A stretch of DNA of 64,000 nucleotides from Oikopleura dioica (GCA_907165135.1 OU015569.1:11284001-11348000), one strand, 5' to 3'; shown: positions 2,978 through 43,701, counted from the stretch's first letter. Notes: generated from the letters alone by a model not told the origin. Translations and numbers: made by a program.

Positions 2978-5900
2978 TCAATGAAATAGACCCTTTGGCC
3001 AGAAAGAAATCATCGTAATTGAAGACTGACTTCCTCTTGGCGAGAAGGTCGAATTTAAAAAAATAAGGATATTAAGCGGACTTCAAGGTAAATAAAGACG
3101 TACATGAAAGAAAGAAATCGGGAGAATGAAGATTTAAGCAATAACATGGAGTTTGAATGTTTGAAGAATCGTTGTTGTTTTTTAAATGAAATGGGTTTGA
3201 AAGAACATTTTGGGAAATTGGGAGTTTCAGTTTTGCCAGCAGAGGAAATAGCTTTTTGAAAGCATGTCTGAAGATGTCGACAGGTTACTTTGATTAGCAG
3301 TTCGGAAATCAATGTAGCCAATTCCACCGGCAGCGATGCGTTCTGAAAATTAGTGTTTTAAAACTATGCGAGCTCTGGAGACATTCTACGAGTCGGGAGA
3401 CATTCTACGGGGTCTTTCTGGGGTTGATTGAATCCTCAATTGGATGTCACAAAGAAGAGCTTCTTAATAGACCCTAACCCTAACCCCAAATAGACCTCTC
3501 CAAAACATACCAGAATCTGAGCAACCAAGATTGATGAAGAACTTGACGGCTTCACGAAATCCGTGGACGCTGAGAAGAGCGGCACTCATCGAACATTCGG
3601 GAAGTTTGAACTCTTTCTTGTTTTCCTAAGAAGATTTTTCTCAAGATAGCGTGTCTTTAGCATTCGACTGTTACCGAGTTTTTGAAGTTTTGCTTGTAAG
3701 GAATGGCTAGAACGATGCCATGGCCAGTGCCGATCCACAGTCGATCTTTGCCTGCGTGGAGTGCAGTTATTCTGACGAAGGAGAACGAAGGACGATCGCA
3801 TAATGAGTCGCCAAATATTTTTGAAACGAAGGGCTCGCAATCCAAGTCCTAGATTGTCAAATTCAAAGTTGAACAAAGAATCAAACCTACCTGTAAGTGT
3901 TGCCCCGTCTTTGCATCGTACAATCTGAGAGTCGAGTCCAAACGAATGGAGACCCAAACGCCACCACCGTGTTTGGAAATGAGTCGAACGCGCGATTCGT
4001 TTCGAGGATGCGCTTGAATCGTTTTCATCTCGCTTTTATCGTCTTTCAAAACTGGAACGATTTTGACTTCATTTCTGTAGCCGCACCAAAGCTTCTTGGT
4101 CTCAGGGATGTAGGCAGCACAGCCGATTGCATAGTGAGGGGCGCCAAAGTCAATGATGTTCACGTCGCTGAAATTCCAAACGCCGTTGATCTGTCGGATC
4201 ACAGCCAGGCTCCCATTTGCCAGAGCAGCAATCAGCGAGTTTTCGCAAGAGTTGAGACTCACGACTGAATCGGCAAGACGCAACTGACCCAGGGCTTTGG
4301 TGTCTTCTGGAGTTACTAAATTTCGACGTTATTAACAGTTTGTTTGTAAAAATCTTTCCCTCATTTCAAGGGCACTTGATCAGAGCTGCAAAAAAAAAAG
4401 GTTTTTACCTGCGACTTTATGAACATAAAGAATCCCATGTTGACTGCCGAACCAGAGTGTTCCTTGAGTAGCATCAATGCTATCTGGCCGCGTAGTGATC
4501 GGCTGCTTGAGCGTGGGATCTGGATTCTTGGGCTCGGGGCATCCCGGAATGTAGATTTGACAGAGCACGACGACATCGCGCAGTGTAAACGAGTTGATTT
4601 GCTTTTGAGGTTCGGAGGATTTGAAGATTGTGATTCGCGAAGCCTAAAAAAGAAAAATGTCAAAAAATGTGTAAAAGGAGATAGTAAATTACCTTCGCTC
4701 GCGAGGCAGAGACGATGCAAATGAGTGGCTCAGGAGCGTCGATACAAGTAGCGCACCAAATCTGTAACAGTGTTAAAATAAAATTAAGCTAGTTCAATCG
4801 TTGGAGCTTCGAAACTTGGCTCTTGAACAGAGAATGATTAAAAAATTAACGTTTCCTTTGAATTGGCGGAGTCACTATCAGCAAGAGGAGCACAATGGTT
4901 GGGAATTGGGATGTTTGACGTGTAGGCTCTGTCGACTTCGCTCTCCGGCAAGATCCAGCCTGACATTTGGGACATGTGCTTTTCGGTATTCTGAGGGCTA
5001 CAATAAGACAAGGAAGTAAAGAACATTTTTACCTGAACAAATCCAGCTACTTTGCAAAGCTCGCTGAGCTCGGCCGAGTTGGACGGGGAAATAGAAGAGC
5101 TCGGCGATTTCAAATCGAAAGTATCCGAGTTTGAATGCGAAACGTGCTTCCCATGAGTTCCAGAAGAAGAGCTGTCCGTTGAAGCACCGAAGAGGCTGGA
5201 GAAAAACTTGTAGATCCCGCCACTTTTGCCGCTTTTGCCACTCGAGTTCTGCGCGTTGGTACTTTCGCTCTTCTTCTCCTCCAGTTGCTCGTATTTGCTG
5301 GCCCTGAGCATTTCCGTCCACCTGACCGCTTCTTGCAGCTCCATCAGCCGTTCTTTGTACTGATTTCGTTCCATCAGTACTCGCGCCATTTCAACTCGCG
5401 TGAATCGTTTTCGCTTCTCGGTCGGTTCATCATCTTGTCCTTCGTTTTGATCCTCGTTTTGCTCCAATGTCGCATGCGACATTCGCATCTTTGCTAGATC
5501 AGCTTCTACCACGCTAATTCGTTTGTAGACAATGTCTGAAAACAGTACTTATGCATATAGAATCATCATCAAATTCGAACCTTTTTCTTTCTTTGCCTTT
5601 TCGAATTCGACTTTGACCGTTGCATATCGATTCGTCATTTCTTCCAGTTCTCTGAGCAGATCATCCTTGACGACGTTGAGTGCATTCTTTGTCTCCATCA
5701 GCCTCGAGTTTTCTTGCTCCAGATCGGCAATTGACCGTGAGCTCGAAATACTACACGACGATTTATGTTAACTTTACTGCCTTTTGTAGAATTTGATGGG
5801 TTTTTGGGCGGTTCATAGGTGGATTTTAGGTGGGTTTATTTCGGGGGGTTTTGGGTGGGTTCGGGAGGATAAGGGTTCTAAAAAGGAGTTAAATTTACCT

Positions 5901-9298: not shown

Positions 9299-9462
9299 TC
9301 TTTAAAAAATACATTTATCAGCGACGAATTCAACATAAAATAGTCAATAAATACCAATGATGCGAGAATATAAACAATTTTTAATAAGATTTACCGCGGT
9401 TCTCATTTCTGACTGACTAAATTTCTGCCTTTGTCACTAAAAATTGAGAAACGCGCGGCTGT

Positions 9463-9564
9463 CTGGGCTCGGCACCCTGTGTAGAAAAGCTGGGTCAGGG
9501 TCCTTGAGAAGGTCGAATAACCCTAACCCTGACTCAGGTATTAAACACTGGTTGGCGAGCCCAG
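9463..9564. mobile_element. palindromic MITE-like element, family A
   Basis: CTGGGCTCGGCACCCTGTGTAG...CCCTGACTCAGG...GGCGAGCCCAG; imperfect ~38-bp inverted arms shared with the other family A copies. Confidence 0.7.
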
Positions 9565-39074: not shown

Positions 39075-40772
39075 TTAAGACAGATTTATCACTTTTAATA
39101 ATTCAGGCACGCCAGTGTCATTCTCTTTCTGTACAAGCAGGATAATATCACTCAGAACTTTCGTTATCAGTGGAAAGTGGGACTCGTTATCACTCGATAA
39201 CTCGCTGTGCTTGAGTTTTTCCACAAAGATGCAATTCTCGCGCCAGGACTCTTCAACCCAAAGTGGCTCCATGTCGATGTGTATTAATTCCGACTTCTTT
39301 CTGTTCATTCTTGATAACGATTTCACGTAATCACTGTTAAGGCTTCTCAATTTTCAATTTAGAAGATTCAAATTTTTGAGCGTAGTTATCAACTAGTCCT
39401 GCGTAAAAAACTGTAACAATTTTAGCAAAGAAACTAGAGCGATAAGAATCAAGTTCGATCTGCACCCCCGTCGAGATCTCCTTGCATGAAGCGCCCTCTT
39501 TTGGAAGAGAATCCAAATAAATCAAGACAGCTTTGCTAATTTTTATGTCCTTTCAAAAAGTAAAAGTGAATCAAGGAAACAGAAACTGAATGTTCGAACT
39601 CGACCGAGAACCACTGTTATAAAATGAAGATGCATGTTCATTAGTTGTCTCGAAATCTTTCGTGTCCCGGAGTCTTTTGCCAATCATATTGAATAAATAA
39701 ATAACAATGATTTCTTATCAAATCAGTACATTTTATATTTATACTCTGCTCAAGTTTCTGGTTGGCCTGGAAATTGGTTTCTACGAAAAATTTTTTGAAT
39801 ACTATTTATGAAGCCTTTCCCATTGTCATAAGTACACGAGTTCACAAATAATTTGTAATTGACGCCTTCCGCCAGCGTCGGTTCATAATTCTCGCCTCCA
39901 GTAAGATTGAGAATTCCGTCGGTTTTCTTGTAGAACTGCTCGGCCATTTCTTGCAGCGTGTTGAAGCTAAACGTCGTGTAGAGAACGAGCTCGCAGTCGA
40001 GGCGATTCAGCTCGCGGAGAAATTGTAGCGCTCCGCGTCTGAAACGAAATCGCCACCCAGATTCCACTTAATTCGTCTTAAACTTCAAAAGCAACCAAAA
40101 AAGTAGACGCTTACATGTATAGTCGGCTTCTATTAGCGCGTGTAGTTCAAAAGAAACTGTCAGTTTCGGGGCATTTTTATGTTTTTCTGGCAGAAATGAA
40201 TCGTAATTCGGCCGTTTTAAACTCTCCCACCAGCTTTTACAGTAGTTCCATCTTGTTCCCGTCGAAATGGTTTTAATTTTTTTCAAAAAAAACGAGCCTG
40301 AAGCTCAGAATTTCAACATAGTATCTAAAACCATAGCTATGGATGCTCCTTTGAGACGCTCATGTGCTACCATAAATCTGTAATTGTTTGGAAAGAATGG
40401 AATCGGATTCATCGCTTCGTGGAATTGCTCTTCGGTGAAATTCTTGATCACTTCTGGAGGATAAATTCCCGTCTCTGGAAGAGGCGGCATTTTCGGAGCA
40501 TCTGGCAAAGCAGCGTAAATTGGTAACTAAAACGCTCAGGTTAATTTCTAGTGAGGCACCAAAGAAGCAAAAATACCTGATAGCAAAGAATTCCAACAGC
40601 GATGCCCTGAGAAGTGATTATTCGCCTTGTTCGTTTCCACGATTCTGGAACCTAAATATTCTCAATTACGAAGTGAAAACACTCCAAAAAGTACCTCATT
40701 CCATCGCTTGACAAGTTTCAACTCGCGAACTTTCGTCTTCAGCTCTTTTATCGCTGCAGAGAGCCGATTCAT
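39075..40772 (-). CDS. TIMM50: divergent TIM50 (mitochondrial import inner membrane translocase subunit, FCP/NIF-like domain); 3' end approximate
   Basis: PKLTVSFELHAL..SGWRFRFRRG resembles PYTLVLELTG..TGWRFKKRPG. ELVLYTT resembles EIVIFTS. YVKSLSRMNR resembles HVKDISCLNR. A hydrophobic N-terminal segment is present. Confidence 0.7.
39439..39503 (+). repeat. short dispersed repeat (family D), copy 2, in TIM50 intron
   Basis: GCGATAAGAATCAAGTTCGATCT...GCGCCCTCTTTT, homologous to 6606-6669. Confidence 0.65.
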
Positions 40773-41138: not shown

Positions 41139-43701
41139 ATGAGCAGACAGAGTTACTATGCATTCGACCCGACGAGAAGGACGAGGGAGAAGTACACAAG
41201 ATTAATCAAAGAACATGAGGTGCTATTTTTATTAATGTTAATAAAAAAAGAAGTAGATGCCTCCCTAAATTGACGATAGATAGGGGGTGCACAGTGGGAA
41301 AATCGAATTTTTTATCATCCTCTTATTGGGATGAAAAATATATCGATAGAAAGCCCATGATCTACTGATCATTTTAACATGTGAATTGGGGTCATTGAAG
41401 GTCACGTGAGGTCACTTGAGGTCAAAATCTGATTTTTCTCAAAGTCGACGTAACTAGGGTTTCTTTGCATGATTTTGATCGCTAATGATCACTGATCATA
41501 AAAATTATCATAAAACACTCATCCGGACCAATCCTGAGCAATCAGAGCAAAAAATAAAAAAATGAGGAAACTTAAATTTCACTGTAAAAATTCTTGAATA
41601 TAAAATCTTGACAAAATGATAACCATAAAGCTAATAAAATCTTGAGCAATAAAAATTTAATAATGACGGGAGCGGGTGGGGTTGGGGACAACACTATAAT
41701 AATAATCAGCGAAATCAAGAATTTCGGATCAAAGGCCTTTGTCAATCCCATTTAAAATTAAAAGCCAGGGACGGGGCTGAGACGGCCCGAAGGGCCGTCA
41801 AGCCCATTTAAAATTAAAAGCCAGGGACGGGGCTGAGACGGCCCGAAGGGCCGTCAAGCCCATTTAAAATTAAAAGCCAGGGACGGGGCTGAGACGGCCC
41901 GAAGGGCCGTCAAGCCCATTTAAAATTAAAAGCCAGGGACGGGGCTGAGACGGCCCGAAGGGCCGTCAAGCCCATTTAAAATTAAAAGCCAGGGACGGGG
42001 CTGAGACGGCCCGAAGGGCCGTCAAGCCCATTTAAAATTAAAAGCCAGGGACGGGGCTGAGACGGCCCGAAGGGCCGTCAAGCCCATTTAAAATTAAAAG
42101 CCAGGGACGGGGCTGAGACGGCCCGAAGGGCCGTCAAGCCCATTTAAAATTAAAAGCCAGGGACGGGGCTGAGACGGCCCGAAGGGCCGTCAAGCCCATT
42201 TAAAATTAAAAGCCAGGGACGGGGCTGAGACGGCCCGAAGGGCCGTCAAGCCCATTTAAAATTAAAAGCCAGGGACGGGGCTGAGACGGCCCGAAGGGCC
42301 GTCAAGCCCATTTAAAATTAAAAGCCAGGGACGGGGCTGAGACGGCCCGAAGGGCCGTCAAGCCCATTTAAAATTAAAAGCCAGGGACGGGGCTGAGACG
42401 GCCCGAAGGGCCGTCGAGCCCATTTAAAATTAAAAGCCAGGGACGGGGCTGAGACGGCCCGAAGGGCCGTCAAGCCCATTTAAAATTAAAAGCCAGGGAC
42501 GGGGCTGAGACGGCCCGAAGGGCCGTCAAGCCCATTTAAAATTAAAAGCCAGGGACGGGGCTGAGACGGCCCGAAGGGCCGTCAAGCCCATTTAAAATTA
42601 TAAGCCAGGGACGGGCCCGGGTTTAATAAATTTTATTAAATTATGATTACTTTTTCCTCTTCCAGGAGCATTCTTCCACCAGCGAAGTCCTCCGGAGGAC
42701 AATTTATGACTCACGCTGGATCACATGATCAGTTTCAATCGTTTAGAGTGGAAAACGGTCATGAAAAAAAAATGTCATCGTCGGGATTCGAACACCCCAC
42801 TTGGCCGAAAAGTGAAGGATTTTGACAGAAAATCGGCTCTAGAATTTTTTGCTCACGAGTGCACAAGATCATATGACTATCATTTGAAAGCGCATGATCT
42901 GCTCTCTTTAATGCTAGAAAATTACAAGGTAACCTTTTGGCACTTTTTTTCTATAGGCAAAAGTATGTTTAGTCTACCCTTCTCACGTGATTTTAGGGGT
43001 GAAAATGTGCTTTTTGGGTTTCCGTGTAATGAAATAAAATGATCCTTAGAAGAAAACGGATCTTTTTGATAGGTTACAATATAGATACATGTACTTTTAA
43101 ATTATCCGATTTTCCCACTGTGCACCCCCTAACGATAGAGGATTAGGAAATGACTAGGGACTTTAGGGAAAATCACTGATATAATTTGAATCTATCATAT
43201 ATTCTTTAGGAGTCGATGGCAAGTACGTATATGAGCGAGTACCAGAGAACATACAAGAATCTGAATCCACTAGTAACTCATTCCATCGATGTTCCAGAAG
43301 ATGTTTCTTCCAATTCTGCTGACACAAGTAACCAGGAATTAACATGGGAAAGATACTTGTCGACTGAGTCGCCACGCTTTGAGTACACGCCCCGGGCGAG
43401 ATTTGCATCAGAAACCAGTGGCTTCTGTCGGACGAGTGAGCCGTTTTCGAGCGCAAAATGCACCCGTGGCAATCTGGCCCAGCCCTCTGAAATTGACCGA
43501 GAATTGAAAGAAGCAGAAACGAAAAATGGTGGAAAAATCAAGATTTACAGAGACGCGGCGACAGAAACAGTAAACACTACTGGCACCCAAACACCCCTAC
43601 AGCCAGTCTACAGAGCTTCAAATTACAGACAGAAACTACAGGCGGTGAAAGAAGCAAACTACCGGCGGAAACCGCAGAGCATCGGTTTTTACTTAAAATA
43701 A
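41139..43701 (+). CDS. hypothetical protein, 2 exons (41139-41219 and 43210-43701), intron inflated by the hAT element
   Basis: Exon 1 MSRQSYYAFDPTRRTREKYTRLIKEHE ends at a GT donor (41220). It joins in phase 0 to TTTAG|GAG TCG ATG, in frame with ORF 43216-43701. Confidence 0.65.
41281..43131. mobile_element. non-autonomous hAT-type DNA transposon, 1,851 bp
   Basis: Perfect 25-bp TIR TAGGGGGTGCACAGTGGGAAAATCG (41281-41305 and 43107-43131). Perfect 8-bp TSD ACGATAGA (41273-41280 and 43132-43139). The TAGGG start is Ac-like. No transposase ORF. Confidence 0.92.
41747..42615. repeat. 56-bp tandem minisatellite, 15 full units plus one partial
   Basis: Unit CCCATTTAAAATTAAAAGCCAGGGACGGGGCTGAGACGGCCCGAAGGGCCGTCAAG, starting at 41747+56n. 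One A>G variant at 42416. Confidence 0.97.

Follow-up and report, generated by a model that had tools for sequence, protein, structure and literature searches.

The window, by which we mean the whole stretch of 64,000 nucleotides of Oikopleura dioica DNA that was analysed (GCA_907165135.1 OU015569.1:11284001-11348000), contains at positions 41281-43131 an element of 1.85 kb that separates two divergently oriented genes, with the 5' end of each facing it. In the assembly, the locus corresponds to C2:11325273-11327139. The neighbouring gene on the minus strand shows NIF-phosphatase-like exons (39075-40067), and the one on the plus strand, for which we obtained a weak cathepsin-propeptide-like match, has the ATG of its first frame at 43216, 77 bp from the element. 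From left to right, the element and its flanks consist of the following parts:

41273-41280, no strand: target-site duplication, left copy, 8 bp, ACGATAGA, identical to 43132-43139
41281-41305, plus strand: left terminal inverted repeat, 25 bp, starting with TAGGG, 0 mismatches against the right end
41306-41740, plus strand: left arm, non-coding, at least 40 genomic matches with 76-96% identity, with conserved blocks
41741-42615, plus strand: array of 15.6 units of 56 bp (TRF), with a GC hairpin core of 33 nt and an A/T spacer of 23 nt in each unit
42616-43106, plus strand: right arm, non-coding, at least 40 genomic matches with 70-95% identity, with conserved blocks
43107-43131, minus strand: right terminal inverted repeat, 25 bp, 0 mismatches
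43132-43139, no strand: target-site duplication, right copy, 8 bp, ACGATAGA, identical to 41273-41280

An earlier note on this DNA had described perfect 25-bp terminal repeats, a perfect 8-bp duplication and two arms enclosing a central tandem array, and all of these were recovered: the repeats pair with no mismatch, the same 8-mer stands on both sides, and the arms measure 460 bp (left) and 516 bp (right) with the terminal repeats included. The duplication of this copy is exactly 8 bp, because the bases beyond the two 8-mers differ. As for the terminal repeat, we found 0 matches to its 25 nt in 100 shuffles of the window. The absence of coding capacity, also claimed before, held as well: the longest frame of the element encodes 105 aa (42725-43042), has no match in Pfam and is interrupted by stops or frameshifts in four of the five other copies that were compared. 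The element is without coding capacity and has no conserved reading frame.

Several short motifs stand out in the arms. GATCA is found 15 times in both arms of the window element together, compared to the 2.15 occurrences expected. In the left arm, three AGGTCA half-sites preceded by GGGTCA lie at 41399-41424 with a 10-bp period and 4-nt spacers, in a DR4-like arrangement that is kept among the left arms of diverged copies; these half-sites may bind the transposase or a host factor. Regarding the right arm, its minus strand carries a B-box-like motif, GGTGTTCGAATCC (42784-42797), with a T9 run 11 nt later (42764-42772), and both were kept in five of the six right arms that extend that far. This combination resembles the 3' portion of a pol III-type unit of tRNA origin. 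A tRNA or a known RNA in the arms was discarded as an explanation, given that neither ARAGORN nor Rfam gave a match.

The OKI2018_I69 assembly of O. dioica comprises 64.3 Mbp in 19 scaffolds, comes from a single male and is haploid-merged, and 44% of the repeats predicted in the genome paper were left unclassified (PMC8008620). Our searches covered 64,281,565 bases in 19 contigs. Using the terminal repeat to collect copies, as the earlier note had suggested, we obtained 39 matches with 2 mismatches or fewer, 26 of them perfect, while the reversed control gave 0. Nine complete elements with paired ends were identified among them, with sizes of 435, 986, 1066, 1158, 1254, 1420, 1851, 2425 and 4377 bp. 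All nine are flanked by a perfect 8-bp duplication, different at each copy, which points to transposition and not to segmental duplication. The locus is not single-copy, and with 39 ends and nine copies bearing duplications of their own, the proposal of a multi-copy, non-autonomous hAT-type family that spreads a structured repeat stands: we consider that 41281-43131 is very probably one copy of a non-autonomous transposon family of the hAT superfamily. This family is not described in the genome paper (PMC8008620) or in the other papers that we searched. Neither the terminal repeat nor the hairpin core had an exact match in the metagenome contigs scanned.

We also compared the copies with each other. 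Matches to each arm are present in at least 40 places of the genome, with identities of 70-96% overall. The closest copies among the matches listed are C5:15069564-15070549 (95-96%) and C4:5960078-5961143 (92%), most matches falling between 76 and 92%. Arms diverge by 8 to 24% among copies while the 25-bp terminal repeat stays constant, and related sub-families with variant terminal repeats are present in the genome. The element had been called young; its perfect ends and perfect duplication agree with this, but its closest sister among the matches listed is already 4-5% diverged. The insertion in the window is recent in relative terms only, and the family it belongs to is old and diverse.

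Nearly half of the terminal-repeat ends (19 out of 39) are located on contig C3, which has 2.9 Mb and represents 4.5% of the genome. The binomial probability of this pile-up is P ~4e-17, a value computed from a manual count that gave 20 ends. In size, C3 agrees with what we take to be the Y-specific scaffold, on which insertions would be expected to accumulate in this way. Besides, family members are nested on this contig, with variant-end copies inserted within arms (L031, L008 and L015). One of these loci holds a composite of 4377 bp (L031 1001-5377; C3:1355878-1360254) that has arrays in both orientations and is flanked by a perfect duplication, GCTATAAG.

The duplications revealed a target-site preference. 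AT occupies positions 4-5 of the duplication in 24 of the 25 distinct insertion sites, whereas its frequency in the window is 7.1% (P ~6e-27), and in the single exception the first base of the terminal repeat is mutated. A weaker preference was observed at the adjacent positions, T at 3 and A at 6. In published hAT elements, the Ac group targets nTnnnnAn and the Buster group nnnTAnnn (PMC3517528), while the Tip group had not been examined in this respect (PMC3517528, PMC3942097). Our 25 sites follow neither the Ac nor the Buster consensus, as they show no signal for T2 and A7 and no TA at positions 4-5, and no transposon paper that contains nnnATnnn came up in a full-text literature search. 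The central-AT rule is a real, if small, novelty, and constitutes a third pattern beside the two published for hAT elements. It argues against mobilisation of the family by a typical Ac-like or Buster-like enzyme.

Regarding the array, that of the window has a period of 56 with 15.6 copies, 99% matches and no indels (TRF). As single-stranded DNA, the unit is predicted to form a hairpin whose GC stem of 8 bp carries a GAA loop and continues into an outer stem of 5 bp, and two units together give a predicted fold of -24.1 kcal/mol (z = -3.3). Tabulated per insertion, as had been proposed, array copy number is variable, from 0 to ~26 units: the simple copies have 0, 3, 4, 5, 10, 15.6 and 25.8. 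In these copies the order left arm, array, right arm and the orientation of the units are the same throughout. The right junction of the array is constant and the left one varies between arm positions 185 and 460, which is expected if expansions and deletions ate into the left arm. Movement does not require the array, as the copy that lacks it, of 435 bp, retains perfect ends and a perfect 8-bp duplication. Arrays elsewhere in the genome reach ~2.8 kb.

Within each copy, arrays are homogeneous, with core divergences of 0-1.5% (0.2% in the window copy). Two spacer variants match two lineages of the arms, one formed by the window element with L034 and L036 and the other by L032, L033, L037 and L001, implying that the array is inherited together with the arms. 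Across seven elements, variable sites amount to 1 of 33 in the core and 1 of 25 in the terminal repeat, compared with 8 of 24 in the spacer and 45 of 156 in the arm (Fisher tests: 0.0007 for core versus arm and 0.003 for core versus spacer), and the only variable site of the core falls in an internal loop. According to these counts, the hairpin core is conserved as strongly as the terminal repeat. As the stems are invariant, no compensatory changes in the hairpin could be counted, and covariation neither supports nor refutes the structure.

hAT termini are of the YARNG type. The family has features of this superfamily: 8-bp duplications that differ among copies and a terminal repeat that begins with TAGGG and whose 25 bp fall within the 10-25 bp of hAT terminal repeats (PMC3942097). 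A link to a hAT protein is found at locus L054 (C3:1852000-1861999), where 24 of the 25 bases of the terminal repeat are present, facing inward, at 9445-9469. Inside this end, at a distance of 1.4 kb and on the strand that reads towards it, there is a hAT C-terminal dimerisation domain (PF05699; L054 7788-8069) with 28.7 bits against a cut-off of 21.4. The remnant is decayed, with two in-frame stops upstream of the domain in the same frame. A protein search of the genome with this remnant matched only itself and its duplicate, and a search of 1.84 billion representative proteins with the 94-aa fragment gave five relatives (E <= 1e-3), all five being short fragments from metagenome or run assemblies that carry PF05699. 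The remnant shares ~30 bp with the non-autonomous arms, essentially the terminal repeat, a common situation in MITE-like derivatives; the GATCA motifs of the arms are absent from its end, where TGCCCGAA is found 6 times versus 0.01 expected. From the number of ends and of dimerisation-domain matches on C3, we estimate the chance of an accidental association between remnant and terminal repeat at roughly 1-2%. The membership in hAT is supported by the 8-bp duplications, the TAGGG ends and, on the protein side, a single decayed remnant in a repeat-rich contig.

Beyond this remnant, the hAT transposase gene with the same terminal repeat that the earlier note had hoped for was not found intact. 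In the assembly there is no intact transposase associated with the terminal repeat of the window element, and no catalytic core or BED finger was found with it either. PF14372, PF14291 and PF04937 gave no genome matches, and PF02892 gave three weak ones elsewhere. Scanning the genome with a degenerate pattern of the terminal repeat yielded short sub-family copies only, and no two terminal repeats at a distance of 3-6 kb enclose a sequence that could encode a protein. Similarly, tblastn with the exons of a second hAT family, described below, found nothing near any end of the first.

The 7-mer GCCCGAA is common to the tip of the array hairpin and to the repeated motif in the end of the L054 remnant. 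A derivation of the 56-bp unit from the subterminal region of the remnant was tried and rejected: the top local alignment, with a score of 23, was equalled by 23 of 500 shuffled units and by 5 of 26 control segments. We retain the shared 7-mer as a weak lead on the relation between unit and remnant.

Other features were observed around these loci. In L054, 3192-6007 and 6427-10000 form a tandem segmental duplication of ~4 kb, with duplicates that are ~4 kb apart and 99.5% identical, that includes the transposon end and its flank, and in one of the duplicates a deletion of 760 bp removes most of the dimerisation-domain remnant. The same locus contains perfect 197-bp inverted repeats (234-430 and 1969-2165, within L054 234-2165; C3:1852233-1854164), between which lies a reverse-transcriptase-like frame of 555 aa (L054 375-2039; weak RVT_1 match). 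On the same contig, L055 has a variant terminal repeat with 19 of 25 identical bases (5477-5501; C3:1687477-1687500) and a flank, CATATATA, with a central AT. The interior of this variant end shows retroelement-like frames (CCCH finger, aspartyl protease), and outside of it there is an unrelated decayed remnant of a hAT dimerisation domain (L055 7026-7199; C3:1689025-1689198), with 24.9 bits and one stop.

The second hAT family has seven copies with a perfect 21-bp end that starts with CAGGGTG (L049-L053), among them L050 3494-9431 (C4:376493-382430) and L051 from 5233 (C4:391232). It has apparently intact, exon-like transposase frames, with spacers rich in tandem repeats between them. Two inverted copies on C4 have swapped flanks, so that TGCTCCAG, found at the left end of one, is repeated in reverse complement beside the inner end of the other, a pattern that is expected after inversion by recombination between two copies. 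As a partner of the window family, we rejected it: the terminal repeats are different and share the first few bases only, the flanks have no central AT, and the two dimerisation domains, its own and that of the L054 remnant, have only 32% identity. It is unlikely to act as a helper.

The earlier note had presented the array as cargo. Taken literally, a pre-existing host minisatellite would have been captured, for instance by template switching during post-excision gap repair, and would have been merely carried since then. In line with this, roughly half of the array loci, among the matches listed, have no arm or terminal repeat of the family nearby. At C3:2358248-2360655 there are at least 43 units that are 99% identical to the window array, with no arm or terminal repeat within tens of kb among those matches, and C4:10075883-10078687, C1:12155363-12157040, C5:7497696-7499332 and C5:2771471-2772870 are further array-only loci. 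The array at C3:2358248-2360655 may be escaped or differently embedded. However, array-only loci may sit in more distant relatives of the family, and the position and orientation of the array are fixed in the simple copies, where the spacer diverges together with the arms, so that any capture would pre-date the diversification of the family. We find a capture of this kind improbable, and regard the array as an old, inherited part of the element instead of cargo.

One could also argue that the family is now a fossil, with its transposase lost from the lineage and its perfect ends left by a past burst. A single decayed remnant of a transposase, no coding pair of terminal repeats at 3-6 kb and mutual differences of 4-24% between copies (among the matches listed) would fit this scenario. 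It is hard to square, though, with perfect duplications in nine of nine copies and 26 perfect terminal repeats after a long residence in a fast-evolving genome; moreover, an autonomous copy might have escaped assembly or be polymorphic, as the assembly is haploid-merged and derives from one male (PMC8008620). Overall, we view extinction of the family as possible, if rather doubtful. A different superfamily with 8-bp duplications (P, Merlin or Zisupton-like), or mobilisation by the second hAT family, is a further alternative: the central-AT target is atypical for hAT, and the second family does have intact-looking, exon-like frames. Against them stand the hAT dimerisation domain that lies inwards of the matching terminal repeat at L054 and, for the helper, the differences in ends, flanks and domain given above. 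We hold both to be very improbable.

For the preferred reading, a non-autonomous hAT family, the following mechanism can be proposed. A hAT transposase supplied in trans would recognise the terminal repeat, and GATCA-type motifs, present in the two arms, are perhaps candidate subterminal sites for its binding. As the copies show, the family inserts by cut-and-paste and duplicates 8 bp of its central-AT targets. The array would grow and shrink by replication slippage or unequal exchange, presumably favoured by the stable C-GAA-G hairpin. DNA mini-hairpins of the C-GAA-G type are very stable. A near-invariant core next to a freely drifting spacer suggests that the core is under constraint. Such constraint might arise if only those units that still form the hairpin get re-amplified, an explanation that we would place somewhat short of even chances; a cis-acting role in mobilisation is conceivable and would be our more hesitant guess, for which the 7-mer common to the hairpin tip and the remnant's end is a lead. 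Putting these elements together, a hAT lineage with an unreported central-AT rule and a hairpin core selected as a cis-acting module is a reading to which we assign little probability. If true, hairpins tipped with GCCCGAA would act by recruiting either the transposase or some host factor, or by stalling replication, and array-bearing parasites would out-compete their autonomous partner, which has nearly vanished from this genome.

Ac/Ds and Hermes, both hAT elements, have subterminal repeats to which the transposase binds. As in these repeats (bioRxiv 10.1101/2022.09.16.508221), short motifs are over-represented near the ends of our elements, GATCA in the arms of the window element and the six-fold motif in the end of the remnant, and both are candidate binding sites; unlike in Ac/Ds and Hermes, the motif of the arms and that of the remnant's end differ from each other. 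The family also resembles hAT non-autonomous elements and MITEs such as Mar and BuT2 from Drosophila (PMC3517528, PMC3942097), with which it shares 8-bp duplications that differ among copies, short YAGGG-like terminal repeats, lack of coding capacity, a few dozen copies and a similarity to the putative autonomous partner that is limited to the ends. It departs from hAT MITEs in its nnnATnnn target, in having no intact partner in the assembly, and in its length of ~1-2.4 kb, which is due to the internal minisatellite.

The note had ranked the element as a candidate for an undescribed system, and this is not supported, since non-autonomous DNA transposons with variable internal tandem repeats are documented (PMC9659126). 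Elements that bear tandem repeats and seed satellites include the miDNA4 MITE of Xenopus tropicalis, Xstir/Xmix, pearl/CvA from bivalves, DINE-1 and Tetris (PMC9659126; PMC4079207). Like them, the window family is of class II and non-autonomous, and its members enclose an array whose number of units varies; as in the miDNA4, Xstir and pearl group, its arrays are homogeneous in each copy and differ between copies, with longer arrays elsewhere. In contrast to that group, its unit is built on a GC hairpin, perfectly paired and with GAA in the loop, and conservation is about ten times higher in the 33-nt core than in the spacer and the arms. The family is a further example of the known link between transposons and satellites, and does not represent a system of a new kind.

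Our general understanding of these elements is left unchanged by this family. Its host, O. dioica, is among the animals whose genomes are the smallest and most rearranged. With its ends, target rule, lineages, array dynamics and pile-up on C3, one repeat family is now defined, which aids repeat annotation, and it gives insertion-polymorphism markers between the cryptic lineages of O. dioica. Besides, an invariant core next to a drifting spacer offers a concrete case in which to test whether the minisatellites that transposons carry have a function or are passengers.
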